From positions 15,314,001-15,378,000 of the forward strand of contig OZ241826.1 of NCBI GenBank assembly GCA_965202585.1: a stretch of DNA of 64,000 bases, read 5' to 3'. The notes beneath the pieces were generated by a model, which saw only the letters and a list, made by a program, of their open reading frames with translations, made no database searches and was not told the DNA's origin. Below are positions 1 to 24,100 of the stretch, piece after piece (within the stretch, counting starts at the first letter, position 1; the number at the start of each line of letters is the position of its first letter). Position numbers and translations under genes: made by a program. The stretch is from Thalia democratica (taxonomy: Eukaryota).

Positions 1-737
1 TGCACGCTGTACAAGTTGTGACGTCATAATGCGTGTTGTTTGACGTACAAGCAGTAGCACGTCAGGTTGCACGCTACGGAATACGTGTGGTTTGGAGAAA
101 ATAAAAAAAAAAGTTGCACCTTTTAAACTGCATATTGCACCTTACACGCTAATTCAGCCAGAAATTTTGAAAAAAGTTGAAAAATGCAGCTGAACTATTT
201 GTGGAGCGTGTAACTTGGAGAAAATTGAAAATTTGCTACTTTTTACGTGTAGTTTTGGGAAAATTGATTTAACCGACGCGTTCTCAAGGTGCAGCGACGC
301 GACTTGCAACTTCAAAATGTGGTCATAATGTAGTCAAATATGACGTCATAATGTGTGATCACGATTCGCTTCCGCTGCACCCGAGCGCCGGCGTTTAGAT
401 TAAAAAAATTAGGCAAGTAATTAGTTTGCTCGTTGTTTAGTATAAATGCATCTATAGCTTTGAAATAAGAGCCTGTTAATTTTTCTACAGCCAAAAATAT
501 GTCATAATTAGTTTAATAAAGTTTTAGTTTTAAATAAAGTTTTTTGTGTATAATTATAATAACTGCTTACAAGTGCATTTATTTAGTTTTAGTGCAAAAT
601 TAGTTCTAACAGCCTGCTCATAAAATTGTTTTCAAACTTTTAATTATATGCAACAAAATTATTTGAATTCGACGCAGCCTGCAGTAACTACGTCGTTCAA
701 ACTTTATACTCTATTATTATTTTCTAATTCAGCTTAC

Positions 738-3145
738 GTGCTTCTGTTGTGGTATCTACAGATGGCAGTGATGTGGTTGTCGGCGCAACACCTTCCGTGG
801 CTTCTTCAGTTTCTGAGGTTGTCTGATCGGATCCTGTGGTTGAGCTTGGTCCAGGTCCTGACGGCGTGGTCGTCTCAGATTTCTGTGTGGTTGAAGTCAC
901 GACGCTTCCCTGTGTCGTTTCAACTGAAACTGGCGCACCTGCTGTAGATGTTTCAGATGTCATTCCTGGTGTAGTTGTTTCCACTGATGTAGCTGTTGTT
1001 GGCGAATGTACAGGAGTTGACTCAACTAGCATGCACCTTGCGCAACACTCTCCGTCCATCTGTTTTAATTTTTGATTGAAATTGTTATTTACATAAGGAT
1101 TGTTAGGTTAAACAATCAAAAATCTAAAAGGTTAAAGTATGTTAGTTGTAAAGGTTTTCTAGTTTAGCATGTTATTTTAAACTCCCAAAAGTTTACTTTA
1201 AGTAAATTAAATTAATAAACAACAGACTCTAAGTTATCATATTCTGTTTAAATCAAATACCTTGACGGCTTTTTCATTGATGAGACAAGCTGGTGTCTTG
1301 CACTCTTTCATGTGGCATTCTGTTTTGTTGCTCATGCACATGCAGGTACCGCATCCGTCAGCTGATTCCCATATGTCTCCGTTCTGTGTAAATAATAAAG
1401 TATGTGTAATTACTTTTAACAAGTAAACTTTTAAAAAAGCTCTAGAACTTAAAAAAGTTGAATCAGTTACAATACTATATTTTAGACTTTACTTTATTTT
1501 GATTGAACTACTTATGCTTGTAAAACTAGAAGTTTACGTGCTATAAAGAAACATGTATTGTAACAATTATGAGTATAGCAGTTTTTAGATAAAATAAACA
1601 ACAAAACAAACATTGTACACTTGGTCCATGTAAACGCACGGACAGTCCTCCTCAGCCACGCAGTTGTGACCATCGTACATGGTACCGTGGGGACACGTGC
1701 ACCCCTGGTTACAGCCTTCCGTGGTTGCCACGCAACCGTCCCTCAAGTGGGGGCACATGTTTGTGCACGAGTTGGCGCAATCGTCGTATGACATCGGTGC
1801 ATCACATACACTGTGTTTGAAATACTATTGTTGAAATTTTTTGTTTTTTAATCCAATTAATTTGGGTTGATTAAGTTAGTATTCAACTGTGCATTGCAAA
1901 AATTGTATTTTGATTAGAATTTGTCAGAAATCTTTAACTTTTGAACTTTGAACATTTTAACATTGTTTTTTACTTTTAAAAAGAAAGCAATAACTAAAAA
2001 AAAACAACTAACAACTTTTATATAAGTAAACACAAAAACATTAAGTGGTTGTAGAACAGTCTGTTTTAAACTAAAGTAAACTTATACTGCAAAGCAGTTA
2101 GTTAAAGTTTCAACATTATTACGGTTACAACAGTTACCTAACAAACGTTTAACTATTTTAAACTTTTAACTTCAAGAAAAAATAAAGTTAATAATACCTG
2201 GTAGTAGTGGTTGTCTTGACAGTAGTAGCAACCTGGGCAGTTGTGCCTTGTGGAACGCAGCTGCAACAACCAGTCTCTGATTCAACTACCTTCGTTTCAC
2301 TTTCATCGCAATCACATGAAGTCTGTGAAAATATTCGGTAAATGATTATTTTTAGAAGAATTTAAAGTATTTAAGTTTAAAGCATTGTTTTCAAAGCCTT
2401 TATGTAAAAATGTTGAAAGTTGTAGTTCATTTGTAGCAATTTAAATAATTAAATCTTGACTTGTTATTGTATTATACACAAGTTATAAGTATTTTGGACA
2501 AGGTTGAAGACTTTATTTTCTAAAATGAATAATACTTAAAATTTAAATTTGAACAACTAACCTTGCAAACTTGTTGTGTGGTGCCACTGATAACACCAGT
2601 AGTAAACACATTAGCAGCAGTAGTTGAAATAAATACAGGTGAACTTGTTGTAGTGACAATCATATTCTTTGTTGTTTCGTCTGATGCTATATATATTGTT
2701 AATTGTTAAAGTTTTGTAAAAAAATAAGGCAAGTTATTTTTGGTCTAAAGTTAGACTTTCAGATTTCGATAAGCTTTGGCTTAATGAAAGTGTTAAAAAA
2801 AGTTTTTAATAATAACCTTCAGTTCTAAACTTATATGCTTTTATTACTTAATGTTGATTTTTGCTAAACATAACAAAGTTTAATTATGCATAAGCACTTT
2901 CTTTTTATTACTTTTCATTTAAAACCAAACAACTAACTTGGCACAGTGACAACAGTGGTGGTCTGTTCAGGGTCGAAGGACGGGGCAGTCGTGGTCTCGA
3001 CGACCTGTTTGGTGGTGGTGGTTTGCACGGGTAGCTTGGTTGTGGTGTCCATGACAATTTTGGACGTCGTGGTAACCACGTTGGTCGTTTTCGGCTTGGT
3101 TTCGACCACGGTGGTTATTTCAACTGCTCCACTGGATGTTTCGGT
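738..3145 (-). CDS. Distal PTS linkers with TIL and VWC modules; gene continues past the window edge
   Basis: [40 protein letters not shown]; [30 protein letters not shown]. The last exon seen ends in a phase-1 gtaagc donor at 737. Confidence 0.88.
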
Positions 3146-6100
3146 CTGATAGTGAAATTAATTAAATTTGATTAAATACTTTTTTGATTTGAAATTATTC
3201 TTTAATATGCTGTATGTAGTTTTTAAAAACCATAAAAGTTTAAAAAACAATAAAATAAAAAAATATTTAGACTATGTATGTGTTACTATTATTGAAACGA
3301 TATAATTTTTATTTTTATTTACCACCATACCAAACTTGAGTATTTTCTCATACTACAGAATCACATTTATCTACCTGCTAGATTTGTTTAAGCTTTTGTC
3401 TGTACAACTTTTGTAATCTTGTTTTTTACAAACCTCAGTTGTTGATGGAGTGGTACCCATTGTTGGGGCGGTCGTCTCATCAACGACTGCTGGTTTGCTG
3501 GTCGTCTTGGCAACGCTTCCGGTCGTTTCCGTGGTCACCACCTTGGTGGTCGTCACTACGACGCGTTGCTCGTAGCAACCGGTGACGTCAACTCTTAACG
3601 ATGGAATGACGTCATCGCTCGATGACATCACTGGGTAGACACGGATAGCAGTGACGTCATTGAGTGGTGTTGGGAACTCGATGACTGAAATCTGACTGGC
3701 ATCAGTGCTGGCTTGGAAGACCTGATAATTTAGATTGTTATGAGGGGTAAAACATCTTTTAAGCTAAGTTATGAGGGGTAAAGCTATATATTGCGGTATT
3801 TAGTTAATCAATTCAGTTTAAGCTTTTGTAGACTTTTCTAAGTAAAAAATACAAGTTTTACTGTAAAAGTTGATATGAGATATTTATACTTTTAACAACT
3901 TAATTAGGGATAAACCTACTCTGTTGTATTAATTTGTCTTAATTTGTATAAAAGTAAATCAGAAAACTATTCAGCAAGTATCGAAACAATCATATGTAAT
4001 TTTAAGACTTGTTTAGTTAAATAATAAAACTAACAGTTGAGTCGTGAGCATCAACAGCTTCAACCCAATTATCACCATTCAAATATTCGATCTTCACAAA
4101 AGAAGTCCAAGATTCAACATTCACACCTCCCTGCACCAAAACTTGCACCACGGTAACCCCCTGGTCGAACTCAACCTGCAGGTATCCTTCCGAATCCCCT
4201 GACGACGGTTGCCATGCGTCGTTGACAACGGAGCTTCTGTCGCTAGTGTCGACCGTTTTGGACATTGATGCCAGCTTGGAGTTGCTCGAAGCCGTGTAGG
4301 TGCTTTCAGGAACCGGAATTCCCCTGTACTGCGTCAGCATCATGACCTCATCGGCACAAGTCTTGACCGTGGCGGCGGTGGTCGTCATCAGCGGCGATTC
4401 GGTGGATTTCGTGGCCAATGTGGTCGTTTCAACAACTTTGGTGGTTTCCACCGTTGTCATTGGGTTTTCAGTTTCCGGTTCAGTGGGTTCTGTAGTCGTC
4501 TTGGTTTCGGTGGTTTCCACGACTTTCACGGGGCCCGTGGTTGCTACGGTGGCCGGGGTGGTTTCTACGACTACAACCTCGGTGGTGGTGGTTCCGCTAG
4601 ACGGCGTTGTTTCCGTGGAAACCGATTTCGTAGTGGTGACAATGACCGGTCCGTTTGGTGTCGTCACTACCTCCTCTGTGGTTGCTATGACGTCACCCTC
4701 TGTTGTCATGACGTCAGAGGGTTTCGAGGTGACGACGGCCGACGATGTGGTGGTTTCCGTTTCTCCCGTCTGCCGGGTGGTCGTCTCGTGACTGACCACT
4801 TCGCCCTGACTCGTCGTGGAGATTATGGTCGTTTCGGTGTAAGTTGGGGATTTTTTGGTCGTCGTCACGATTTTGACTGGTTTGCCGGTTGTGACATCTG
4901 ATGGTTTTGTAGTTTCAGATACTGATGGTGACGATGTAGTTTCAACTTCAGACTTTTCAGTAACTTCTGGTGCTGTAATAAATACAAATTTTTTTAATTG
5001 TGATGTTTTGATATCAATTTTTACAAATTTAGCTTTTCAAGTAATTATTTTAAAAGAAAATTTTAATTGGAAAAATAAATAAGTATTAAAAATTATTATC
5101 AGAGAAAAATTAGCTATTTTAAAATAGATTAACAATGGTAATACGGGTTTTTTATTAATTCTGCATATACAGTTTCTTTATTTTACCATAACCATGAATA
5201 TTTAACTTTAATTTATTTTATTAGTTTCTAGCTAACTTTCTGTTGTTGGTACGGTAGTCATGACAGACTTAACAGTAGTTTCATGTGTTGGTACTTCACT
5301 AGTAGTTTCAACAACTGTTGTTTTCTCATATGATTGAGTTGTTACTGGTGATTCAGTGCTTTCAACAACTGGTGATGGTGTAGTTTCAACTGATGTTTCA
5401 GTTGATGTAACTTTCTCATACATTGTTGTTGTGGTAACTTGACCTTCAGGAGATGTTGTTTCTACTTCAACTGGTTTGTAAGTTGTAGTTTCAACAGTCT
5501 TGCTGGTTGTAGTTGGTTCAGAAGTTTCAGTTGATTCACCAGTTGTGAATGTTTCTAAAAATAATATGTATTCTTGAAAATCTATTTACTTTCAGAGATG
5601 ATTTAATGTACAAAGCATCATTTAGCTTAAAAACTTATTTAAAACTTTAGCTTACTAGAGTTTTAAACAAAAACTAACAAAAAAATTGAAAATGAAGTAT
5701 TACCAAAAAATTTATTTTACAGTTTATGTTTTAAAAGAACATTTATATATATATATATATCCTTAAAGGTTTTAGTTTATAATTTTTTTAACCTTTAACT
5801 GTAGTTTGTACAACGACAACAGGCTCAGTTGTTGGTTCATCATTTGAAGATGTAGATGTAGGAGTTGATGTTACGACCTCCGTTGTTGTCTTTTCTACAG
5901 TTGTTGGCTCCAAAGCTGGTAAATTAAGCAATTATGAGTTCATGTGTTCGAAAATATAACATTTTAATATTACGTCGTCCAATAATTATCGCTTGTTAAA
6001 CAAAGATGAGCATATTTTTTGTACCGATAATAAACTTATTATTGTTTTGAGTTTTTTAAAATTTATTTTGTTCCGTGTGTAGTTAAAAATAAACTTTATT

Positions 6101-9100
6101 ATACATTTAGAAGCTGTTATCTAAAAATTGTGTTGTTTATTGGACAGTAAAAGAAAGTACGCGCAAAAAGTTTGGTCTAAAAATTTGGCTTAAAACTTAA
6201 CTAAGAATAAAAGACTTTTACTTTATAGACTAAGCATCATGCAGTTAGTTGAAAAAAAAACTAAAATGAATAAGAAAACAAATTCAAAAAATTTACAAAC
6301 ATAGCTTATTATTTGACTTTTAAGTGTGTATGATATCTTTCTTATGTTTTATCAGCTACTGTAATTTTTAAAACTGTTTATGTTACTTAGTCTATTAAGT
6401 ATACTATTTAACTTTGTATTAAATCTTCCAGACAATAGATGCAAGGTTTTAATTCAAGTATCTTTGAAGCAGCAAAACATATTTTCAAAAAGCCATTTAA
6501 GTCCTTAGTTTGAAATTTGAAACTGATGACAAAAATTAAATGCCTAGTAACAAAACAAAACTCTTGAATCAGCATCATAGCTGTACTATGAACAAAAATA
6601 TTGATAAAACTTAAATTAAACTGTACATTCTGTCTTTTAAATTTATATAAGTACTTAAAAATGGAAACAAATTAGTAAACAACACATTGGTGAGTGAGTT
6701 AAAATTAATTTTATCTGCATGTTTTTTTATTATAGATAAACATTTATGGTGTTTCTTTAAAATTGGTCTACAAGCTTTTATATACTTTGTTATCACTAAA
6801 TCTCCTTAAATATAATTTAATGTTTAAATACAAAAACATAGAAAAAGTTAAAATGCTATGTATTTGTATTGTACAAAGATATTTTTAAAGTTTTTTGTAA
6901 AACTATTCAGGTTTTTAACAAAAGTAATTATGGTCTTTGGTTTTGTCTACCATAAGTTTGGAATTGATAGTTTAAAATGTAGTTTTTCTTTAATTGTATT
7001 TTTTGCAATAAGTAGTTGTAATGACCATTTTAATATATTATATTTAAGTTCTTCACTTAAAGATACTATAGATTTTAGGTGTAAGTAAAAATTCAAGGTA
7101 AGAAAATAGTTAAAGTTATGAAAGTGTAAATTAAGCATATTTAATAAAGAATTAAGTTAAAAAATTAAATAGTTATACATTATAATAAAACTAGATTTCA
7201 CCTTTTTCTGTGGTTGTGTCTACAATTGGCTTTGTTGTTTTAACAATAACTTGCTTAGTTGTTTCAACTTCATATGGTGTTGTGGCTTCAGCTTTAGTTG
7301 TTAATAAAACAACTTCACCTTATAAAAGTTTAAAAAATTAAAGTATTAGTTATGTTGTTAAAAATAATATATATATATATATTTATGTTTTAAATGATTT
7401 TTTTTTCTAACACAATAAATAATATTTTAAAATCAGTGTATAATTGTAGTTTTAATAAAAAAGCAGAAGGAGAATAACTTTTATTAAGAAGAATTAATAA
7501 AATATTTGATGTTATATATTTAAGTGCTTATATTAAAAAAAGTGTTTACCTTCTGTTGTTGTAATTTTAGATGTTGATGTTGAAATTTCTGTTGTTACTT
7601 CATTGTATTTAGGTGTTGTCACTTCAGCTTCAGTAGTAGTTGATACAATTACTGGGCTTGTTGTGTTTTCTGAAACCACAGCTGGTTTAGTTGTGGTGAT
7701 AATTTCAGTAGTAGTCTTGATCTCAGTTGTTGTTTCAATGGCCTTGTAGCAACCCAACAATGCAATCTTGATTGCTGGCTCATCACCAGTCCATTCAACT
7801 GGATGTACTCTGATTGAAGTGACCAAAACTGGTTGTTTGTCAGTGAAGTAAATGCTAGACATCTGACTGTCATCTACATTAGCAGTGAAAGTGTCATCAT
7901 CATTTTCAGATGAAATTGATGTGAATTCTTCACTTGGCTCATCAGAAGAAGTGTCAAGTTTGTAGTCAACCTTGACTTTGCTGACAAATTTACCAGTGTC
8001 TTGTCCTGCACCCTTGACAGTCAATCCAAATATGTAGACTGGCTGCTCAAACTCAATTTGAACCCAAGCATCATTGTCAGATGCAATATCTTCAGTAGAT
8101 GGTGACCATGGTTTGTTAGCAATATCTTCAGGCTGGTTGCTTGATGCAGATATAGTTGGAAGTGAACTGATCTGTGAACCATAAACATTGTCAATATCCA
8201 TTGGAAGCTCACATAGTTTGTCTTCAGTAAATTCAGTTGTAGTTTCAACAGCAGGTTTTGGTGTAGTGACAGTTGATGTGTGTACAATATGCGCTGTAGT
8301 AACTGCTTCAGTTGTGGTCTTTGCTTGACTTGTCACAATTTCTGTTTATTTTTTAAATTGGTTAGTTTATTTTTGTAGATATATAAGTAATATGATTTAA
8401 ACAATTATAAATAAAAAATGTTTGTTGTTTACCTTTTTCAGTAGTTGTTTGTTCCTTCTGTGTAGTTTGTTCAATAACATTGTTAACAGTGGTTTCATGT
8501 GTTGGTACTTCACTAGTAGTTTCAACAACAGTTGTTTTCTCATATGATTGAGTTGTTACTGGTGATTCAGTGCTTTCAACAGCTGGTGATGGTGTAGTTT
8601 CAACAGATGTTTCAGTTGATGTAACTTTCTCATACATTGTTGTTGTGGTAGGTACTCCTTCAGGAGTTGTTGTTTCTACTTCAACTGGTTTGTAAGTTGT
8701 AGTTTCAACAGTCTTGCTGGTTGTAGTTGGTTCAGAAGCTTCAGTAGATTCACCAGTTGTAAATGTTTCTAAAAAATTATGACATATTAGATTCTTATCT
8801 AGATAAAAACTTTCTGCAAAACTTACCTTTTACTGTAGTTTGTACAACAACAACTGGTTTAGTTGTAGATTCTGCAGCAGAAGTTGATGAAACTGGTTTT
8901 GTTGTAACAACTTCTGTGGTTGTTTTCTCAGTGACAACAGCTGGTTCTGATATAAAATTTTTAAACATTAATATAGATATTTTAGAAAATTAGTTCTTAA
9001 ATTTTTTTTGATTAAGTGACCATTTTAAGTTTTAGTTTTAAGAAAAGAACAAGCAGAAAATTATGTAGGTAAAAATAGTTTTGTTTCTTACCAGTATTAG

Positions 9101-12100
9101 CGTCAGTGGCAATTGGTTTTGATGTCGTTTCAACAACAACTGTTGTGCTTTCAACTTCATAAACAGTTGTAGTGTCAACTGGTTCACTTGTAGATGTAGT
9201 TACTTCTACTGGTGCTTCAGTAGTTGTTTCTTTAGTAGCCATAGTTGACACAACTGTAGTTACTTCTTCTTGATTTGATGTAGTTGATACAACAGGACTT
9301 GTTGTTGTACCTTCTTCAACAACTGGTTTAGTTGTGGTGACAATTTCAGTTGTAGTTTTGATCTCAGTTGTTGTTTCAATGGTCTTGTAGCAACCCAACA
9401 ATGCAATCTTGATTGCTGGCTCATCACCAGTCCATTCAACTAGGTGTACTCTGATTGAAGTCACCAAAACTGGTTGTTTGTCAGTGAAGTAAATGCTAGA
9501 CATCTGACTATCATCTACGTTAGCAGTGAAAGTGTCATCATCATTTTCAGATGAAACTGGTGTGAATACTTCACTTGGCTCATCAGAAGAAGTGTCAAGT
9601 TTGTAGTCAACCTTGACTTGGCTGACAAATTTACCAGTGTCTTGTCCTGCACCCTTGACAGTCAATCCAAATATGTAGACTGGCTGCTCAAACTCAATTT
9701 GAACCCAAGCATCATTGTCAGATGCAAGATCTTCAACAGATGGTGACCATGGTTTGTTAGCAATGTCTTCAGGCTGGTTGCTTGATGCAGATATAGTTGG
9801 AAGTGAACTGATTTGTGAACCATAAACATTGTCAACATCCATTGGAAGCTCACAAAGTTTGTCTTCAGTAGACTCAGTTGTAGTTTCAACAGCAGGTTTT
9901 GGTGTAGTGACAGTTGATGTATGTACAACTTCAGATGTTGTTGAAACAGCTTTTGTTGTTTTCAATGTAGTTTGTAGAACATTCTCTAAATTACAAAAAT
10001 AAATTTTTTAAAGCTCTTGTAAATACTTGAACTTCTTATTCTTTGATTTAAATATTTTAGGAGATATCATAATTTAAGTCATCGCTGTTTAAGGCCAGAA
10101 AGGTATCACTTCGATTTTTACTAATGAATTTTGTTTTGTTGAGCTTTATTTTAGCTTTCAAAAATTCAGATATTAAAAAACACTTAAAGTTTTTTCAAAG
10201 GTGTAAGCAGTCAAAGTTGGCCAGTTCAAGTTTCTAAAACATGGGAAATAATCAAAAAGGCAAATTAAACTTCTTAACTAAACATTTATTTATTTTTTCT
10301 TTTTTTATTCAATTACATAAACACTCTATTGAATTTATAATAAATATTTAAATAATTAACCTAAATGACCTTTCATAAATTAAGAGTGTTTCTAAAAATT
10401 AAGGTTTCTCGCTAAAAAAGATAAAGTAACTAGATCATTAGTGAACTTTTGTATATCTATAAAAAGTGATGTTCTTAAGTTTGAATTTGGAATTATTTAC
10501 AAAAATGCCTATTATCAAAAATTAAAAAAAATATTTTATTTTATGAAAATTATTAATTGGTTCAAACAGTAAGCCTTACTAAAGAAACAATGTTAATTTT
10601 ACAAAAATTACTTTAACCCTCTATTGACCTTAGATCAGAGTACTAACACCTGAGGTTAACATTTAGCAACCATTAAAAAATTAATCATTTCCAAGATTTT
10701 TAAATCATAGTTTAAGTGTTAAAACAATACTTAAAAATATTGTAAGCATAAGTGTTATTTGTTCAAACCTTCTCCAGTAGTTGTTTGTTGTTTCTGTGTA
10801 GTTTGTTCAACAACATTGTTAACAGTAGTTTCATGTGTTGGCACTTCACTAGTAGTTTCAACAACAGTTGTTTTCTCATATGATTGAGTTGTTACCGGTG
10901 ATTCAGTGCTTTCAACAGCTGGTGATGGTGTAGTTTCAACAGATGTTTCAGTTGATGTAACTTTCTCATACAATGTTGTTGTTGTAACTTGGCCTTCAGG
11001 AGTTGTTGTTTCTACTTCAACTGGTTTGTAAGTTGTAGTTTCTACAGTCTTGCTGGTTGTAGTTGGTTCAGAAGCTTCAGTAGATTCACCAGTAGTGAAT
11101 GTTTCTAAAAAATGTTTATCTCATGTTGTGGTACAATATATTTCTTAAGAGATTAACCTTTTCAATGAATATGTATAAAACAAACCTTTTACTGTAGTTT
11201 GTACAACGACAACTGGGTTAGTTGTAGATTCTGTAGCAGAAGTTGATGAAACTGGTTTAGTTGTTACAACTTCTGTTGTTGTTTTCTCAGTGACAATAGC
11301 TGGTTCTGTTGAATATTTAGTTCTAAAATATTATATTTGTTTTGAATAAATTTCCCTCAAAATTTAAGGTTTTCAAATTAAATATTTTCAGTTCTTTTGA
11401 GTAAAGTTATCTAAAAAGATTGTGTATATTAATGTAATAATATTTGAAAATATAATACCCTATCTTCAATTCAAACCTGTTGTTTCATCAGCAGAAGGTG
11501 TTTTGGATGTTGTTTCAACAACAACTGTTGTGCTTTCAACCTCATAAACTGTTGTAGTGTCAACTGGTTCACTTGCAGATGTAGTTATTTCCACTGGTGC
11601 TTCAGTAGTTGTTTCTTTAGTAGCCATAGTTGACACAACTGTAGTTACTTCTTGTACACTTGCACTAGTTGTTGATTCAACAGTTGAAGTTGGTGCTGTT
11701 GTACTTTCTTCAACAATAACTGGTTCAGTTGTGGTGACTATTTCAGTTGTAGTCTTGATCTCAATTGTTGTTTCAATGGCCTTGTAGCAACCCAACAATG
11801 CAATCTTGATTGCTGGCTCATCACCAGTCCATTCAACTGGGTGTACTCTGATTGAAGTCACCAAAACTGGCTGTTTGTCAGTGAAGTAAATGCTAGACAT
11901 CTGACTGTCATCAACGTTAGCAGTGAAAGTGTCATCATCATTTTCAGATGAAACTGGTGTGAACTCTTCACTTGGCTCATCAGAAGAAGTGGCAAGTTTG
12001 TAATCAACCTTGACTTTGCTGACAAATTTACCAGTGTCTTGTCCTGCACCCTTGACAGTCAATCCAAATATGTAGACTGGCTGCTCAAACTCAATTTGAA

Positions 12101-15100
12101 CCCAAGCATCATTGTCAGATGCAAGATCTTCAACAGATGGTGACCATGGTTTGTTAGCAATGTCTTCAGGCTGGTTGCTTGATGCAGATATAGTTGGAAG
12201 TGAACTGATTTGTGAACCATAAACGTTGTCAACATCCATTGGAAGCTCACAAAGTTTGTCTTCAATAGACTCAGTTGTAATTTTAATAGCAGGTTTTGGC
12301 GTTGTAAATGTTGAAGAGTGTACAACTTCAGATGTTGTAGATGCAACAGTAGTTTTCTTTGTTGAACTTGTTGCAATGGTTTCTGCATATTTGTATACAT
12401 TTGTTAGAAACTAAAAAAACATACTGAAACAAAATAGAAAATCTACTATTTTAGATATTACAAGCAACAACTTTTTTAAAAATGAAAGCGTTAGACATAA
12501 TTTGGATATGGTGGTAACTTAAGTAACTATTTTATTAACAAATCATGTTTAAAAAGACAAAGTAAACAATATATGTTTTTGTTTTTTTTAATTTTTATTT
12601 TAAAAGTTATAAATAGAAAGGTTATTTTTCACTAAGAATTTAAATAAATAAATCTCATGTTTTATATTTTTTTGCAACTCAGTACGCTTATAACATTTTA
12701 AATGATAATTAGCATAAAATATAATTATAACATTTATAGTTTCGATTATTTTTATTCATACTAAGCTTGAAATATAGAAAGTGTGTGATGTTAGATTTTC
12801 AAGTTATTTTTTATTGAGTGTTATAGTTTTTTGTAAGTATAAATTTTATATTCATATGACAGAGTGTAGTTACCGAAGTTTTGGAAGTTATTGTATCAAA
12901 GAAAAAAAATCTTTATATTTAAATAATAATAACAAGTAAGATAATTCTTATTTATTAAAACCTTCTTCAGTAGTTGTATGTTGTTTCTGTGTAGTTCGCT
13001 CAACAACATTGTTAACAGTAGTTTCATGTGTTGGTACTTCACTAGTAGTTTCAACAACAGTTGTTTTCTCATATGATTGAGTTGTTACTGGTGATTTAGT
13101 GCTTTCAACAACTGGTGAAGGTGTAGTTTCAACAGATGTTTCAGTTGATGTAACTTTCTTGTACATTGTTGTTGTGGTAACTTGACCTTCAGGAGATGTT
13201 GTTTCTACTTCAACTGGTTTGTAAGTTGTAGTTTCAACAGTCTTGCTGGTTGTAGTTGGTTCAGAAGCTTCAGTAGATTCACCAGTTGTGAATGTTTCTA
13301 AAAATCATGACTTATTAGATTCTTATATAAATGAAAACTTTCTGCAAAACTTACCTTTTACTGTAGTTTGAACAACAACAACTGGTTTAGTTGTAGATTC
13401 TGTAGCAGAAGTTGATGAAACTGGTTTTGTTGTTACAACTTCTGTTGTTGTTTTCTCAGTGACAACAGCTGGTTTTGTAAGTTTATTTTCATATGATTTG
13501 TATATATGCTTATATATTTTATTTTAAAAGATTGATAATGTGACTGTTTGAAATTTTAGTTACAAGAAATCAATAAGTAAAAGAATATGTAGATAAAAAA
13601 ATATTGTTTCTTACCTGTATTGGCTTCTTTAGCAACTGGTTTTGACGTTGTTTCAACAACAACTGTTGTGCTTTCAACTTCATAAACAGTTGTAGTGTCA
13701 ACTGGTTCACTTGTAGATGTTGTTACTTCTACTGGTGCTTCAGTAGTTGTTTCTTTAGTAGCCATAGTTGACACAACTGTAGTTACTTCTTTTTGACTTG
13801 ATGTAGTTGATACAGCAACAGGGCTTGTAGTTGTACCTTCTTCAACAGCTGGTTCAGTTGTTGTAACAATTTCAGTTGTAGTCTTGATCTCAGTTGTTGT
13901 TTCAATGGTCTTGTAGCAACCCAACAATGCAATCTTGATTGCTGGCTCATCACCAGTCCATTCAACTGGATGTACTCTGATTGAAGTGACCAAAACTGGC
14001 TGTTTGTCAGTGAAGTAAATGCTAGACATCTGACTGTCATCTACATTAGCAGTGAAAGTGTCATCATCATTTTCAGATGAAACTGGTGTGAATTCTTCAC
14101 TTGGCTCATCAGAAGAAGTGTCAAGTTTGTAGTCAATCTTGACTTTGTTGACAAATTTACCAGTGTCTTGTCCTGCACCCTTGACAGTCAATCCAAATAT
14201 GTAGACTGGCTGCTCAAACTCAATTTGAACCCAAGCATCATTGTCAGATGCAAGATCTTCAATAGATGGTGACCATGGTTTGTTAGCAATATCTTCAGGC
14301 TGGTTGCTTGATGCAGATATAGTTGGAAGTGAACTGATTTGTGTACCATAAACATTGTCAACATCCATTGGAAGCTCACAAAGTTTGTCTTCAGTAGATT
14401 CAGTTGTAGTTTCAACAGCAGGTTTTGGTGAAGTAACTGTAGATGTGTGTACTACTTCAGATGTTGTTGACACAGCTGTGGTTGTTGTTTTCAAAGTTGT
14501 TGGTAGAACATTTTCTGTAGATTACAATGAAAATTTCCATTAAGAAGTATTGTTGAACTTGAAATGTATTTTATTTATTTGTGTTTGCTTCATAATACTT
14601 CAACACTGTACTATCTATTTATCACTCAAAACAATTAAATTATTGAAGAAGGAGTTTACAGGTTTTGTATAAGTAAGCCGTTTTAAGTCCATAAATTCTT
14701 AGAAATTTTATAAAACTTTAAGCTAATGAGAAATTAGTTAACTATTTGTTTATAGGATGAACAGTATTTAGGTAGATTGTTAATTTTAGATTAGAATCAG
14801 GCATCTTTTGATAATTTGACAAATATAAGGTGGGTGAAAAAAACATAAATGTCTTTCACACAAAGATGCTTTTGTACAGATCTTTCATTTAAAAAAAAAC
14901 CATTTTCAACTCTGCTTATTTGAGTTAAGCATTATATTAGATCACATAGTATGAATAAGCAGAATTGATTTCATTTAATTACTGAAAGATCTTTTGCTGC
15001 ACATTTTTTTGTAAAGAGTTGAGACAGTTGTTTTTTTTACAAATTATTTATTATTGTTATCTATAAGTTTAGCAATTACCGTCTCCAGTAGTTGTTTGTT

Positions 15101-18100
15101 CCTTCTGTGTAGTTTGTTCAACAACATTGTTAACAGTAGTTTCATGTGTTGGCACTTCACTAGTAGTTTCAACAACAGTTGTTTTCTCATATGATTGAGT
15201 TGTTACTGGTGATTCAGTGCTTTCAACAACTGGTGATGGTGTAGTTTCAACAGATGTATCAGTTGATGTAACTTTCTCATAAATTGTTGTTGTGGTTAGT
15301 ACACCTTCAGGAGTTGTTGTTTCTACTTCAACTGGTTTGTAAGTTGTAGTTTCAACAGTCTTGCTGGTTGTAGTTGGTTCAGAAGCTTCAGTAGACTCAC
15401 CAGTAGTGAATGTTTCTAAAAGTAATAGAATTTTTATATTTCTATATAAATTTTTCTTGCAAAATAAACTTAAGTATTATTTTTGTACTAAATCAACCTT
15501 TAACTGTAGTTTGAACAACAACAACTGGTTTAGTTGTGGAATCAATTGCAGAAGTTGAAGAAACTGGTTTTGTTGTTACAACCTCTGTTGTAGTCCTTTC
15601 CACTTTAGTGACTGGCTCTATTATTTTAAATGCATAATTTAGTAAATATTTATCATAAGTTCTTTGTGAAAATTTAAATCTTATATGTTATGTAAAAAGT
15701 AGAATGTTTTTAAGAAAAAAATAATGTATAGGAATTTATTAACAGTAGTTTTTCTGTTTTTGTTATTAGTTTGTTTTTGTAAATTTGTGACTTCATTCTA
15801 TGAAATTGGTATATTAAAGTATGTTAATTTTTTTTTGTTAGGCCTTGTTCCGGTCCATGATTTTTCACTATTTTAAAAGTTTAGTTGTTTATAAAACATA
15901 ATTTTGGTTTATACTTTGAATATTTTTAATACCTCCATTATTATCAATTATCTTTTACTTACCTGTGTCAGCTTCAGTAGCAACTGGTTTTGATGTTGTT
16001 TCAACAACTACTGTTGTGCTTTCAACTTCATAAACAGTTGTAGTGTCAACTGGTTCACTTGTAGATGTTGTTACTTCTACCGGTGCTTCAGTAGTTGTTT
16101 CTTTAGTAGCCATTGTTGACACGACTGTAGTTACAACTTCTGCCTTTGATGAAGTTGTACTCTTTGATGGTTCATCTTTGCTAGTAGTTGATGGAACTAT
16201 TTCAGTTATGGTTACTGTTGTCTCTTCAGGCTCTGTGGTTTCATTTGACTCTGTGACTGCTTCAGTTGTTTCCACTGCTGGTTTTTTAGTAGTTGTCACA
16301 GTTTCTGAAGTAACTGCAGTGCTGACTTCAGTAGTAGTCTTGTCACTTTCTGTTGCTGCAGTTGTTTTCATTACTTCAGTTGTTTTTGTTGTTGTTACTT
16401 TAGTTATGGCTGAAGACTCATCAGTAATTGGTGTTGTAGTTACTGTCTCAACGGTGGTCTTTTCAACAATAGTTGTGTTGTCCACAGTGGATTTAGTTGT
16501 CACAACAGTCTCTTCAGTCGTTGTTGAAACAACTGCATCAGTCACCACAACTTCTTCTGGGCATCCAATCAGTTCAAAACGAAGTGCAATTTTGTCATCA
16601 TCATTTTCTTTAAGAGGGTAAATCCTCACTGAAGATGTTGAAACTACATCAAAGTTGTTCTCAACCACTTTTGTTGAGTCCTTGTTGCCATCAAATACAA
16701 GTGGAGTCTTATTATCTTCAGTCAATGGTACATACTCTTCATTGGTTGCATCGTAAACTGCAATAGTGAATTTGGGAGTGAAGCTCTCGTTTTCATCACC
16801 TTGAGTTCTTATTCCAGTCAGTTGCACCAGAGTTGGGAAGTCAACTTGTATGAACGGCTCTTCATCATCATCCTTAGGCGACCAGGCTGGAAGCTCTTCA
16901 ACAACATCGTCCTCAGCATCTTCAGCAAAGACAGTGTTATCAAGAGTGAGACGAGCGTTGGTTGGCTCCTTGTTTTCTTTCCACGTTGTGGCTGTGATCG
17001 AGTCATCACTGATGTCACGTGACTTCATTCCCATGTCTTCATCACAGAATTCTGATATTAGAATATTATTAATTAAGTTATAGCTTAATGAAAATTACTA
17101 AATGTTAATTAAACTTTGAATAGGTGTCTAACTTCAATTTAATTGAAGTATGACAACAACACACAAATTAATTTTAAGGTTTAAATACTGATTATTTTCA
17201 AAATTATGTACAGTTTACAGTTAAACATCTTTGTTTTGAATCAAAACAAATGCTTTTTCTTATTGTACTATTTATATTCATTAGTTTTGCTTACTTGCTG
17301 TAACAAGCTCAGTAGTTGTTGATCTTGATGAGGTTGATGAAACAGTAACTGGTGTTGTATCACTTACACTTGCAGTAGTAGCTACCTCTTCTGTGCTTGA
17401 AGCTGATTTTATATTGTTATTATAATAAGAAGTTTAAAAATGTGTTTTAAATTTAATACCGCATTAATAATAATGTTAAGTAAAAAAACATTTGAGTACA
17501 AATAAGGTAAAAACTAATTAAACAAAGAGAGTGGAGCAATGCGATTTATAGCCTGCTATTTTTGTATAATGCATTATAAAACATTCCACTTTGCTGTTTT
17601 TACTATCAATCAAATTACCTGAAGTAGTAATTTCAGTTTTAGGGGTTTCGCTTGTTGTAACTGAGGCAGTAGATGACTCGCTTGCTGGTATGGTTGTTGA
17701 AGAAACAACTTCCTCTGTTGTTGAACCATCTGCTCTGGTAGTAGTTGATACATCTACGGGACTTGTAGTTGTACCTTCTTCATTTATAGCTGGTTTAGTT
17801 GTGGTGACAACTTTAGTTGTAGTCTTGATCTCAGTTGTTGTTTCAATGGTCTTGTAGCAACCCAACAATGCAATCTTGATTGCTGGCTCATCACCAGTCC
17901 ATTCAACTGGGTGTACTCTGATTGAAGTGACTAAAATTGGTTGTTTGTCAGTGAAGTAAATGCTAGACATCTGACTGTCATCTACGTTAGCAGAGAAAGT
18001 GTCATCATCATTTTCAGATAAAATTGATGTGAATTCTTCACTTGGCTCATCAGAAGAAGTGTCAAGTTTGTAGTCAACCTTGACTTTGCTGACAAATTTA

Positions 18101-21100
18101 CCAGTGTCTTGTCCTGCACCCTTGACAGTCAATCCAAATATGTAGACTGGCTGCTCAAACTCAATTTGAACCCAAGCATCATTGTCAGATGCAAGATCTT
18201 CAATAGATGGTGACCATGGTTTGTTAGCAATGTCTTCAGGCTGGTTGCTTGATGCAGATATAGTTGGAAGTGAACTGATCTGTGTACCATAAACATTGTC
18301 AACATCCATTGGCAGCTCACAAAGTTTGTCTTCAGTAGACTCAGTTGTAGTTTCAACAGCAGGTTTTGGTGTAGTGACTGTAGATGTATGTACAACTTCA
18401 GATGTTGTTAACACAGCTGTGGTTGTTTTCAATGTAGTTGGAAGAACATTTTCTGTTAAAAGTATTACATGCATTTTGTTGTATTAGTATGATTTTTACC
18501 TTCATATCGAAAATAAAGAACTGTTTTAACTAAGCAACATAAATTGTTGGGAGCTATTCCGTAGTATCTACTATATGTATAATTGATTGTACTTTAAAAT
18601 ACGCATTTTCTTTAAAATAACAAATTAGTATGTTAAATAATGGTTGCAATTACCATCTCCAGTGCTTGATTGTTGTTTCTGTGTAGTTTGTTCAACAACA
18701 TTGTTAACAGTAGTTTCATGTGTTGGTACTTCACTAGTAGTTTCAACAACAGTTGTTTTCTCATATGATTGAGTTGTTACTGGTGATTCAGTGCTTTCAA
18801 CAACTGATGATGGTGTAGTTTCAACTGATGTTTCAGTTGATGTAACTTTCTCATACATTGTTGTTGTGGTAGCTACTCCTTCAGGAGTTGTTGTTTCTAC
18901 TTCAACTGGTTTGTAAGTTGTAGTTTCAACAGTCTTGCTGGTTGTAGTTGGTTCAGAAGCTTCAGTAGATTCACCAGTTGTGGTTTCTAAAAATATTACA
19001 AACATAAACCTTAAGTTTGAGTTAAAGCAGTCAGTTTAAAGTATTTAAATATTCCAAAATTACCTTTCACTGTAGTTTGTACAACAACAACTGGTTTAGT
19101 TGTAGATTCTGTAGCAGAAGTTGATGAAACTGGTTTTGTTGTTACAACTTCTGTTGTTGTTTTCTCAGTGACAATAACTGGTTCTGTAAATTTAATTTTA
19201 CATGATTTATTAGTTGAAAAAATGTTGAGCTTAATTTTGATTATTTCCTGGAAGTTTAATGGTGGTGTGACATTTAATAACTTTTATTTTTTTATGATAT
19301 AGAAATGCTAAGTGTATAAGTGGATAAGTTTTTTTATTTAAGTTGGCATACCAGTATTAGCTTCAGTGGCAACTGGTTTTGATGTTGTTTCAACAACAAC
19401 TGTTGTGCTTTCAACCTCATAAACAGTTGTAGTGTCAACTGGTTCACTTGCAGATGTAGTTATTTCTACTGGTGCTTCAGTAGTTGTTTCTTTAGTAGCC
19501 ATAGTTGATACAACTGTAGTTACTTCTTCTTGACTTGATGTAGATGATACAACAGCTGGGCTTGTAGTTGTACCTTCTTCAACAACTGGTTCAGTTGTGG
19601 TAACAATTTTAGTTGTAGTCTTGATCTCAGTTGTTGTTTCAATGGTCTTGTAGCAACCCAACAATGCAATCTTGATTGCTGGCTCATCACCAGTCCATTC
19701 TACAGGGTGTACTCTGATTGAAGTGACCAAAACTGGTTGTTTGTCAGTGAAATAAATGCTAGACATCTGACTATCATCTGCATTAGCAGTGAAAGTGTCA
19801 TCATCGTTTTCAGATGAAACTGGTGTGAATTCTTCACTTGGCTCATCAGAAGAAGTGTCAAGTTTGTAGTCAACTTTGACTTTGCTGACAAATTTACCAG
19901 TGTCTTGTCCTGCACCCTTGACAGTCAATCCAAATATGTAGACTGGCTGCTCAAACTCAATTTGAACCCAAGCATCATTGTCAGATGCAAGATCTTCAAT
20001 AGATGGTGACCATGGTTTGTTAGCAATATCTTCAGGCTGGTTGCTTGATGCAGATATAGTTGGAAGTGAACTGATTTGTGTACCATAAACATTGTCAACA
20101 TCCATTGGAAGCTCACAAAGTTTGTCTTCAGTAGATTCAGTTGTAGTTTCAACAGCAGGTTTTGGTGAAGTAACTGTAGATGTGTGTACAACTTCAGATG
20201 TTGTTGAAACAGCTTTTGTTGTCTTCAATGTAGTTGGAAGAACATTTTCTGTTAGAAAATAATACATAAGTTTCAATGTAACGGTAAGATTTTTTACCTC
20301 AATTTTTAAATTGTATAACTTTTTAATAACTAAGCAACAGAAATTTTCTTACGCTTTTCAATAGTATATCTTTAATGTATAATTGATTTTGTATAAAAAA
20401 GACATTTGTCTTTATAAGAAATTAATACGTTGAACAATGGTAATGTAATTACCGTCTCCAGTAGTTGTTTGTTCCTTCTGTGTAGTTTGTTCGACAACAT
20501 TGTTAACAGTAGTTTCATGTGTTGGTACTCCACTAGTAGTTTCAACAACAGTTGTTTTCTCATATGATTGAGTTGTTACTGGCGACTCAGTGCTTTCAAC
20601 AACTGGTGATGGTGTAGTTTCAACAGATGTTTCAGTTGATGTAACTTTCTCATACATTGTTGTTGTGGTAACTACTCCTTCAGGAGTTGTTGTTTCTACT
20701 TCAACTGGTTTGTAAGTTGTAGTTTCAACAGTCTTGCTGGTTGTATTTGGTTCAGAAGCTTCAGTAGATTCACCAGTTGTGGTTTCTAAAAATATTTTAA
20801 ACATAAACCTTAAGTTTGAGTTAAAGCACTTAAGGCCATAGGGGGGGGGGGTAAACCATGTTTTTTACAAGTTGATCATATTTTATAGAGTTTTTCTAAG
20901 CTTCAAGATGATTTTTATTGTTTTAAAAAATTTAATTTAATTTTTGAGATATGACCAGTCAAAGTCCGACCGCATGATAGGTTCCATATGGAAAGGGAAA
21001 ACTAAAACAGCGAAAAAAGACTATTTCATTTAAAATGTATCTCCTCCTACATTTTTCCAGCAATCTTCTTCAAACTTTCACAGTCTAATATTTCTACAAT

Positions 21101-24100
21101 AACAAAAAAAAACGTTACTTTGGAATTAAAAAAGAAAATTGTAAAAATATTTTTTTTTTGAAATAAAAACACTTTTTATTAGTTTTTCTGATAATTTTTT
21201 AATTTTTTAAAATTATTAAAATTCTAAAGTAAGTTTTTCCTTTTTATTATAAGGAACGTTTGCTGAAAATTTTAAGAAGATTGCTTGAAAAATGAAGGAG
21301 GAGATAAATGTTTAGTGAATTTTAAAATTTCCGAGAAAATTGACCCTAAAAAATTTGCGGTCCATACGTTTATATTAGAAAATTTTTACCAAAAATTAAA
21401 TATCTCAAAAGTCAAATGATATTTTTGAATGCTATAAAAACTTGCTTGTAGTTTGTAATTAAAGCTTTTATATAAAATTCAAAGTTAATTTTTGTAAAAA
21501 AAAAAGTTTGACCCCTCTATGGCCTTAATTTAAAGTTTTTAATTATTATTATTAGAAGAATTATAGTTATTAATTATTTCAAACTTACCTTTAACTGTAG
21601 TTTGTACAACAACAACTGGTTTAGTTGTAGATTCTGTAGCAGAAGTTGATGAAACTGGTTTAGTTGTTACAACTTCTGTTGTTGTTTTCTCAGTGACAAT
21701 AACTGGTTCTGTAAATTTAATTTTACATGATTTATTTGTTGAAAAAATGTTAAGGTTATTTTTGATTATTTCCTGGAAGTTTAATGGTGGTGTGACATTT
21801 AATAACTGTTATTTTTTTATGATATAGAAATGCTAGGTGTATAAGTAGATGAGTTTTTTTTAATTTAAGTTCACATACCAGTATTAGCTTCTGTGGCAAC
21901 TGGTTTTGATGTTGTTTCAACAACAACTGTTGTGCTTTCAACTTCATAAACTGTTGTAGTGTCAACTGGTTCACTTGTAGATGTTGTTACTTCTACTGGT
22001 GCTTCAGTAGTTGTTTCTTTAGTAGCCATAGTTGACACAACTGTAGTAACTTCTTCTTGACTTGATGTAGTTGATATAACAGCTGGGCTTGTAGTTGTAC
22101 CTTCTTTAACAACTACTGGTTCAGTTGTTGTAACAATTTCAGTTGTAGTTTTGATCTCAGTTGTTGTTTCAATGGCCTTGTAGCAACCCAACAATGCAAT
22201 CTTGATTGCTGGCTCATCACCAGTCCATTCAACTGGGTGTACTCTGATTGAAGTTACCAATACTGGTTGTTTGTCAGTGAAGTAAATGCTAGACATCTGG
22301 CTGTCATCAACATTAGCAGTGAAAGTGTCATCATCGTTTTCAGATGAAACTGGTGTGAATTCTTCACTTGGCTCATCAGAAGAAGTGTCAAGTTTGTAGT
22401 CAACCTTGACTTTGCTGACAAATTTACCAGTGTCTTGTCCTGCACCCTTGACAGTCAATCCAAATATGTAGACTGGCTGCTCAAACTCAATTTGAACCCA
22501 AGCATCATTGTCAGATGCAAGATCTTCAATAGATGGTGACCATGGTTTGTTAGCAATATCTTCAGGCTGGTTGCTTGATGCAGATATAGTTGGAAGTGAA
22601 CTGATTTGTGTACCATAAACATTGTCAACATCCATTGGAAGCTCACAAAGTTTGTCTTCAGTAGATTCAGTTGTAGTTTCTACAGCAGGTTTTGGCGAAG
22701 TGGTAGTGATACTGCTAATGACTTCAGTAGTTGTAGATGAAGCTGTTGTTGCAATAACTTCAGCACCTAAAATAATAGTAATTAAGTAAATATATTGGGA
22801 GCTATCACAAGTGCTTTTAGTTAAAACTTACTTGTCTCTACGTTTAAAACAGTTGTTTCGAGAACCTCTGTAGTGCTAACTGGAGTTGTAGTGCTCGTCA
22901 ACACTCCAGTAGTCTCCAAATCAACAATCTCAGTGGTTACGCCAGCAACTGTGGTTGTCATTTCAACTGCGCCAGTAGTTGTAGTGTCAACTACCACAGG
23001 CACCGAAGTAGAAGTCGGCTCAGTTGCTACCTCACTTGTAGTAGAAACATCGCTTTCAGGTGTAGTTGTGGCGACTGTTTCGACAGTAGTGGTTGCCTCG
23101 TACCTCGTAGTTGGAATGACGTCCCCGCTTGGAGTTGTCATTTCTTCTGTTACTGGCGCGATGCTGGTGGTTTTAATCTCTTTTGTTGTAGACAGCGTGG
23201 TCGTTTCAACAGTGCTGAAGCATCCCTTCACTGCGGTTTGCATGCTGACGCGTTCGTGGTACGCAAGCGCAACTACTCTGATCGACTTGGCTTCCAAGTA
23301 GAATGGAATTTCAATCTGTTCGAATTTACATACTCTCTTTACAGCAAATAAAATTATGATAAATGGTTTTATTAAAATTTTCTAACCAAAATAAAAAGTT
23401 TAAAAGGTTGTTTCATTAAGTTTAAACCCAAGAACACTATCTTATTCTCACCTCAACTTCGCTTGTTGAATCAGTGTTAGCTCTGAGCACGAGTTGTTCC
23501 TCCTCATCAAGTCCTTCCTCGTCAACTTTCAACCAATCAACGCCGTTTGTTGACGCGTGAATTGCCACCTTTGTGACGTAACTGTCGTCGCTTGCGTCAC
23601 CGCGCACAAACACAGACCTCACAATCACCGGCTTGATGAAGTTGATCTTTGAAAATTTGATAAGTTAGTCAAAGTATTAAGCCAAGTTGCTTAAATTGGT
23701 GAGTTTTGAAAATGCAATGGTATAAGTTGGTTATGTGTGTCTTGAATGAATCTATGTTTAGGTTGGCTGTTAATGCTTAGTACAAAGTTAAGAAACTTAT
23801 TTAGGAATGGCCTATTGAGGTTAATATATAAATCTTGGTATAATTTTTTTTACAAACACCTACTTATTAAACGTTTTAAACATTATAAGGGTCAACATCA
23901 TAACCATTTATTTATTTTCTACATTAAAACATTAATATTTATAAAATATTTTAATAAACAAATTGCTTTAGACATTACTAGAATTTAAATATTTACAAGC
24001 ATATTTTTTAATATGCTACAAGTTAATCTCTTTAAATCATGTACTGTTTTATTATATTAAATCAAACCTATAATTATAACATATATCTCCTAAAAACAAG

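Follow-up and report, generated by a model that had tools for sequence, protein, structure and literature searches.

The described proteins closest to the one considered here are the invertebrate gel-forming-mucin-like, or hemolectin-type, proteins, which carry an F5_F8_type_C (discoidin) domain next to a Pro/Thr/Ser-rich (PTS) region after three VWD units and group nearest to SCO-spondin (Lang et al. 2016, PMC4948705). Our gene, roughly 60 kb long, lies for the most part in a stretch of 64,000 nucleotides (nt) from Thalia democratica (contig OZ241826.1 of assembly GCA_965202585.1, forward-strand positions 15,314,001 to 15,378,000), the whole of which we call the window, and at the core of the gene there is a cassette of 24 consecutive exons. 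It resembles the hemolectin-type proteins in its three N-terminal VWD-C8-TIL assemblies, its discoidins with adjacent PTS sequence, and its C-terminal VWC and putative cystine-knot-type parts. The discoidin-PTS part, however, is expanded here (at least 11 discoidins in the gene, 8 of them inside the tandem cassette), LDLa and many TIL and VWC exons are interspersed, and the second, downstream VWD block of the hemolectin "3+2" layout is not seen. SCO-spondin differs in other respects: the present gene has long PTS regions, and the thrombospondin type 1 repeat (TSP_1), of which SCO-spondin has many between its LDLa/discoidin region and the C-terminus, gave no match in the 43 translated exon stretches that were scanned.

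Other mucins offer partial parallels. The gel-forming mucins of tunicates are known to vary in their central modules (PMC6109156), and the PTS region of chicken Muc13 is encoded by multiple near-identical exons, for which alternative splicing was proposed to set the PTS length (Lang et al. 2006, PMC1552070). As in Muc13, the repeat units of the Thalia cassette coincide with exons; Muc13, however, is a small mucin of the transmembrane type in which each repeat has one exon, whereas here a three-exon unit with a folded lectin-type domain belongs to a protein of the gel-forming type. In the centre of the vertebrate MUC5B, MUC5AC and MUC2, CysD domains alternate with PTS repeats, and the whole central region is a single very large exon. 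These share with our gene the small folded domains set at regular intervals in a long O-glycosylated region (glycosylation being predicted in our case) and a super-repeat made by tandem duplication, but the Thalia gene has discoidins instead of CysD and 24 exons instead of one. Finally, tropoelastin and the PEVK region of titin are cassette-style genes with extensive, documented alternative splicing. In these genes and in the phase 1-1 modules of Patthy, as here, every module lies between phase-1 introns, permitting in-frame duplication, deletion or skipping; unlike in tropoelastin and titin, no alternative splicing is seen in the RNA contigs that cover exons 7-11 of our cassette. The gene encodes a known kind of protein built in a known way, and the idea that mucin length could be adjusted by splicing has already been published for Muc13.

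The exon chain and the protein it encodes

Our interpretation, which we hold to be likely, is that the 24 exons are the constitutively spliced centre of a single giant gene for a secreted protein of the gel-forming-mucin-like kind, which is encoded on the minus strand, the gene extending from about 43.7 kb in the window to about 17 kb beyond its start, in which a unit of phase-1 exons has been duplicated in tandem. The surrounding DNA is AT-rich and eukaryotic in character (about 30-38% G+C), and on the minus strand the long open stretches switch between discoidin-like and Thr-rich sequence. When the exon chain was rebuilt from splice signals, reading frame and copy-to-copy alignment, it gave 24 consecutive exons running from 22766 down to 5237, each with an AG acceptor, a GT donor and a length divisible by 3 (Table 1). 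All 24 are of phase 1-1, the first two bases and the last base of each belonging to split codons. Joined, they amount to 10,590 nt, or 3,529 stop-free codons, and the product of 3,529 residues consists of 24% Thr, 13% Val, 12% Glu, 10% Ser and 6% Pro. A scan of the cassette introns for hidden Thr-rich pseudo-exons found none. The two exons that flank the cassette are asymmetric (phase 0 to 1 upstream and phase 1 to 0 downstream), so that the symmetric run ends exactly where the preliminary description of this DNA had placed its limits.

That description had also claimed 24 symmetric phase-1 exons with lengths divisible by 3, any subset of which could be removed or repeated without a frameshift. 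The rebuilt chain bears this out and even extends it: the last base of all 24 exons is G or A, so a stop at a junction codon is impossible for any combination of exons. The list of lengths given at that time holds for 23 of the 24 exons, the discrepancy being exon 13. Its 120-nt version (13355-13474) has ACAA where the six other copies of this exon type read ACAG, and as this version has no AG acceptor, a chain search for the exact series of lengths originally listed found no match. The next AG, six bases further in, defines an exon of 114 nt (13355-13468) that is likewise divisible by 3 and phase 1-1. With the loss of the ancestral acceptor (window 13469-13474), either the exon shortened by 6 nt or skipping of the exon is to be expected, and both would be in frame; exon 13 therefore provides a natural test case for exon definition in such an array.

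The cassette is built of seven copies of a three-exon unit made up of type A (about 900 nt), type B (120 nt) and type C (about 336 nt). There are variations on this theme: the tail of type A has been split off as a separate exon in two places (exons 7+8 and 21+22), exon 9 carries a divergent discoidin, and the last B and C exons are divergent as well. The type A exons and exon 9 encode a discoidin (F5/8 type C) domain according to Pfam, with PF00754 scores of 34.7 and 55.3 bits against a cut-off of 28.2. An AlphaFold2 (AF2) model of one of these domains (pLDDT 77) has the C domains of factors V and VIII and the b1 domain of neuropilin as its best matches in the Protein Data Bank (Foldseek E about 1e-8 to 1e-9, TM 0.6-0.7). 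The score, the beta-sandwich and the flanking Cys pair, located at KLCELP and LLGCYK, all agree with a discoidin assignment.

Upstream of the cassette, a Pfam scan run exon by exon, with the exons not joined into one model, revealed VWD pieces at 43659-42759, 38323-37508 and 35893-34719, C8 matches at 41944-41080, 37203-36607 and 34548-34174, and TIL matches at 37203-36607 and 33954-33649; the TIL of the first VWD assembly had no Pfam match. The gene thus possesses the three N-terminal VWD-C8-TIL assemblies by which gel-forming mucin-like proteins are recognised. It also possesses their long PTS region, in the form of the Thr/Ser/Pro-rich cassette and further Thr-rich exons downstream. Past the window start it continues for about 17 kb, in which TIL, VWC and LDLa exons are accompanied by a long PTS exon made of tandem repeats, by VWC, and by a sequence that matches the cystine knot weakly.

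A protein of this architecture would have the polymer-forming ends known from mucins and von Willebrand factor: its N-terminus would carry the three VWD-C8-TIL assemblies, and its C-terminus VWC together with a probable cystine knot. Between them would lie eight discoidins spaced by about 290 residues of Thr/Ser/Pro/Val/Glu-rich sequence, presumably O-glycosylated. By analogy with the mucins such a protein may polymerise, and its discoidins could act as regularly spaced binding or cross-linking knots, in the manner of the CysD domains of MUC2 and MUC5.

Table 1. Exons of the cassette and other parts of the gene, in window coordinates.
Feature	Position	Strand	Phase	Description	Support
Exon 1	21879..22766	-	1-1	888 nt, type A: Thr-rich lead, discoidin, Thr-rich tail	AG/GT, open frame; Pfam F5_F8_type_C E=2.3e-8; P0006 crosses acceptor; AF2 discoidin fold
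Exon 2	21589..21708	-	1-1	120 nt, type B Thr-rich spacer	RNA contig loose end with A-to-B junction sequence
Exon 3	20453..20785	-	1-1	333 nt, type C Thr-rich spacer	
Exon 4	19352..20248	-	1-1	897 nt, type A	
Exon 5	19064..19183	-	1-1	120 nt, type B	
Exon 6	18654..18986	-	1-1	333 nt, type C	
Exon 7	17619..18452	-	1-1	834 nt, type A, tail shortened	RNA contig joint to exon 8; splice sites kept in Tara contig L006
Exon 8	17295..17402	-	1-1	108 nt, separate Thr/Ser-rich tail exon	RNA joints both sides; 100% identical in L006
Exon 9	15963..17051	-	1-1	1089 nt, divergent discoidin and long Thr-rich tail; single copy in genome	Pfam F5_F8_type_C E=9.7e-15; RNA joints 17051/17295 (three runs) and 15617/15963
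Exon 10	15498..15617	-	1-1	120 nt, divergent type B	RNA joints both sides
Exon 11	15080..15415	-	1-1	336 nt, type C	RNA joint 15415/15498; onward joint to type A exon start
Exon 12	13615..14514	-	1-1	900 nt, type A	
Exon 13	13355..13468	-	1-1	114 nt, type B, first usable AG	Alignment of seven type B exons
Exon 14	12962..13297	-	1-1	336 nt, type C	
Exon 15	11477..12382	-	1-1	906 nt, type A	RNA loose end with junction to type B
Exon 16	11186..11305	-	1-1	120 nt, type B	
Exon 17	10769..11104	-	1-1	336 nt, type C	
Exon 18	9092..9985	-	1-1	894 nt, type A	
Exon 19	8827..8946	-	1-1	120 nt, type B	
Exon 20	8433..8768	-	1-1	336 nt, type C	
Exon 21	7550..8341	-	1-1	792 nt, type A, tail shortened	
Exon 22	7202..7318	-	1-1	117 nt, split-off tail exon, homologue of the end of full type A exons	
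Exon 23	5793..5915	-	1-1	123 nt, divergent type B	
Exon 24	5237..5554	-	1-1	318 nt, type C with different end	RNA loose end carries its specific KSVMTT tail
Upstream flanking exon	22832..23315	-	0 to 1	484 nt, end of divergent discoidin and Thr-rich stretch	Donor confirmed by P0006
Downstream flanking exon	4035..4972	-	1 to 0	938 nt, Thr-rich and first part of divergent discoidin interrupted by a phase-0 intron	Pfam F5_F8_type_C, partial
N-terminal part, same gene	29305..43659	-		EGF, three VWD-C8-TIL assemblies, further TIL and VWC exons	Pfam matches exon by exon
Upstream of cassette	23440..28187	-		LDL-receptor class A exon; two divergent multi-exon discoidins with Thr-rich linkers	
Downstream continuation	1..3763	-		Remainder of a discoidin; Thr-rich, TIL and VWC exons	

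Transcription and splicing of the cassette

The cassette sequence is present in both marine metagenomes and metatranscriptomes. To examine its splicing, we have aligned the RNA contigs of three metatranscriptome runs (two samples) and of one further run to positions 15000-18560 of the window. These data are assembled contigs from mixed plankton, representing a population about 5% diverged from this genome, and they cover 5 of the 24 exons directly. Within the aligned region the RNA contig depth over the introns is zero, and the joints that end at splice sites are 17051/17295 (in three runs), 15617/15963 and 15415/15498. Moreover, a single RNA contig of 394 nt spans exons 7, 8 and 9 with exactly the predicted lengths and includes the junction 17619/17402. 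Other RNA joints run backwards and connect the end of a 336-type exon with the beginning of one of the 900 type, and loose ends of the RNA contigs match the sequences predicted where A meets B, B meets C and C meets A in other units. Additional junctions are found in transcript-derived proteins: the ocean-catalogue protein P0006 crosses from the upstream exon into exon 1, and in a more distant relative P0010, P0011 and P0013 cross a C-to-A junction and P0012 an A-to-B junction. Exons 7-12 of the cassette are, in short, transcribed and spliced.

Several observations weigh against reading the whole as one constitutively spliced mucin-like gene. Direct junction support covers exons 7-12 and the entry into exon 1, the other exons being placed by paralogy and splice signals, and RNA contigs are blind to rare isoforms and to expression levels. 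From the VWD exons to the putative cystine-knot exon the parts are contiguous and on the same strand, with no gene seen between them, but RNA continuity along them is limited to the same exons 7-12 and the entry into exon 1. At the C-terminus, the VWC matches lie above the threshold, whereas Cys_knot reaches 20 bits against a cut-off of 24, and does so in one exon only. Finally, two RNA contigs from different samples join the interior of a type A exon (17788/17790) to the interior of a type B exon (15537). This joint is in frame, has no splice signals and falls at a 13-nt direct repeat, ACAACTAAACCAG; it could either be a deletion-type variant unit present in the population or an artefact of template switching.

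Origin of the array and sources of variation

The pattern looks striking as 24 symmetric exons in a row, but it comes down to about five cases, all inherited, of the standard phase 1-1 design. The exons are copies of a few types and hence are not 24 independent observations. The number of independent phase 1-1 cases is about five (seven times three exon types, plus exons 8, 9 and 22), and the corresponding chance expectation is approximately (1/3)^5, or about 0.004, rather than 3^-24. The same exon class recurs in related genes. On the same chromosome, 28 Mb away, there is a paralogue on the plus strand (43640001-43670000, loci L015-L017) with the same EGF/VWD/C8/TIL start. A single exon of 1,713 nt contains its two discoidins, and behind this exon there are seven or more pairs of Thr-rich exons of 348 and 264 nt that have no discoidin. 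The paired exons have their homologues in type C and in the type A tail, and the 1,713-nt exon and the pairs are all predicted to be phase 1-1. In addition, two metagenome contigs from relatives with discoidins about 50% identical to ours contain the arrangements A-B-C (861, 135 and 387 nt) and C-A-tail (825 and 111 nt); their exons are also predicted to be phase 1-1, and the transcript fragments P0010-P0013 match those junctions. Protein searches with one type A, one C8-TIL and one type C exon recovered only unnamed metagenome and metatranscriptome fragments, with neither named relatives nor skipping isoforms among them; comparison with the ESM Atlas gave only generic discoidin clusters, and a scan of JGI metagenome contigs found no relatives. 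A search for glycoside hydrolase family 6, which among animals is known only from tunicates, had no match in this genome and none in the control genomes, and so says nothing about the taxon.

Since the phases are the same in the paralogue and in relatives of about 50% identity, the pattern is inherited and not coincidental, and the phase 1-1 class is, judging from these comparisons, ancestral to the family. The layout of the cassette is indeed the standard design of shuffled animal extracellular modules, whose usual carriers are 1-1 exons (PMC7259759). We suppose that the cassette arose by tandem duplication of a three-exon unit in which each exon already lay between phase-1 introns. The array would be old: it is common to the paralogue and the distant relatives, and most paralogous introns have no remaining similarity. 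In an evolutionary sense, the notion of plug-and-play modules put forward in the preliminary description is supported by the different combination of the same exon types in the paralogue and by the split and unsplit tails.

The exons and introns of the array have had very different histories. Paralogous exons of different units are 93-96% identical, with a synonymous divergence (dS) of 0.05-0.15 and a ratio of nonsynonymous to synonymous divergence (dN/dS) of 0.2-0.5, and in the discoidin core dN between units is 0.003-0.03. The paralogous introns, on the other hand, have no detectable similarity, except in units 1 versus 2 and in one intron pair of units 5 and 7. An orthologous contig from a Tara metagenome (L006) permits a comparison between populations: its exons are 95-100% identical to ours with no indels and all splice sites kept, and its introns are 93% identical to the window with four indels (of 1, 2, 3 and 1 bases). 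As orthologous introns are still 93% identical, fast intron evolution does not explain the lost similarity among the paralogous ones. This combination suggests that the exons of an old array have probably been homogenised by gene conversion that halts at the diverged introns. Near-identical exons amid unrecognisable introns would make a clean case of exon-by-exon concerted evolution.

Such exchange is at the heart of the strongest rival explanation, a real if less than even possibility, namely that the relevant variation is allelic: unequal recombination or gene conversion would make the number and composition of the units differ between individuals, and the intron phases would be irrelevant. 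The near-identity of exons in different units extends over hundreds of bases and provides ample substrate for exchange, ocean metagenome contigs (L006 and L008) combine unit parts in ways unlike this genome, and the number of modules in the paralogue is very different. Moreover, a whole unit measures about 1,341-1,362 nt and is divisible by 3; exchange would therefore be in frame whatever the phase, and a change of copy number does not need symmetric exons. The mosaic contigs, however, come from short-read assemblies made with k=127 and may be chimeras, since the stretches of complete identity between units exceed 127 nt. Nor does this assembly help, as it holds one haplotype only: a search for a second haplotype of the array in this genome found a single copy. 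The earlier suggestion that alleles might tune filament length, valency and spacing fares unevenly; the mosaic ocean contigs hint at it, with the proviso that they may be chimeras, but the symmetry of the exons has no bearing on it.

The mosaics themselves deserve a brief description. In L006 (positions 1-330, compared with 8250-8590 and 18360-18810 of the window), the end of an exon, a 91-nt intron and the initial 50 nt of unit 8 run directly into the body of exon 7, behind which come exons 8 and 9. The 5' flank of unit 8 here sits on the unit 3 body, and the contig represents either an array that has recombined in that population or a chimera of the k=127 assembly. In L008, a start resembling that of unit 8 is combined with a full tail, and type B and C exons come next. 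We have considered L006, L007 and L008 as structural alleles but retain them as a weak lead only, since an assembler working at k=127 may jump from one unit to another wherever they are identical over more than 127 bases.

It is unlikely, in our judgement, that the symmetric exons are a splicing toolkit in which tissue- or stage-specific skipping, be it of individual exons or of entire units, sets the polymer length, the number of discoidins and their spacing. The gene structure would certainly allow it: all 24 exons are frame-neutral, no combination of them yields a stop, and exon 13, having lost its ancestral acceptor, is expected to be either shortened or skipped, with either outcome tolerated. 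The idea also has a precedent, as splicing-adjusted PTS length was raised earlier for chicken Muc13 (PMC1552070). In the three metatranscriptome runs, however, all the joints that end at splice sites are constitutive, and skipping joints with such ends over exons 8, 9 or 10 are absent. The search for alternative inclusion, which found constitutive junctions only over exons 7-11, is a weak test in that contigs lose rare forms and 5 of the 24 exons are represented. The transcript-derived proteins of the relatives similarly keep the constitutive order C-A and A-B. Furthermore, the phase 1-1 symmetry, which is the norm for extracellular modules (PMC7259759), is sufficiently explained by exon duplication. 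The proposal that isoforms tune filament length, valency and spacing is thus unsupported by the RNA contigs. The depth over the single-copy exons 8 and 9, which is less than 1/7 of that over the repeated exons, might have been taken as a sign of skipping, but we have dropped it because contig depth cannot rank the parts of a gene.

It is highly improbable that the array is an assembly artefact of expanded, collapsed or mis-joined repeats and that 24 is not the real count: tandem repeats of 2.2-2.7 kb that are about 95% identical are indeed difficult to assemble, but each unit is anchored by its own unrelated introns of distinct lengths, the window has no runs of N, and the independent contig L006 is collinear with it over 2.8 kb, introns included.

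Possible function and neighbouring features

With a folded lectin-type domain alternating with mucin spacers, the protein is a candidate structural component of mucus. One may speculate, although we consider it quite improbable, that the cassette is the ruler of a pelagic filter-feeder's mucous net, in which the discoidins would be knots joined by glycosylated rods of about 290 residues, and either the choice of exons or the gain and loss of units would alter how many knots there are. Assuming an extension of roughly 0.25 nm per residue, an estimate, each unit would measure roughly 70 nm and the cassette about 0.6 micrometre. If this were true, the number of knots would determine how far apart the cross-links of the fibres lie, or how wide the meshes are, in different tissues, life stages or populations. 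Should variable use of the units prove to be real, the gene would be a tractable model for the tuning of mucus architecture. In any event, the genome of this marine animal, which is unannotated, now has a checked exon model of the repetitive core of one giant mucin-like gene.

The remainder of the gene shows other ways of organising the same kinds of sequence. Beyond the window start, one minus-strand exon (L005:4264-5265, or window -4735 to -5736) combines an LDLa domain with more than 25 copies of a near-perfect tandem repeat of 9 residues (TTGPIASTT-like). This single-exon PTS repeat is of the classical form, in contrast to the multi-exon cassette of the same gene. The discoidins also come in two forms: the eight of the cassette are intron-free, whereas the three divergent ones that flank it (window 23440-26394 and 3374-5036) are each split by introns. 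In the two flanking discoidins that were checked, a phase-0 intron lies at the same place, before the last strands.

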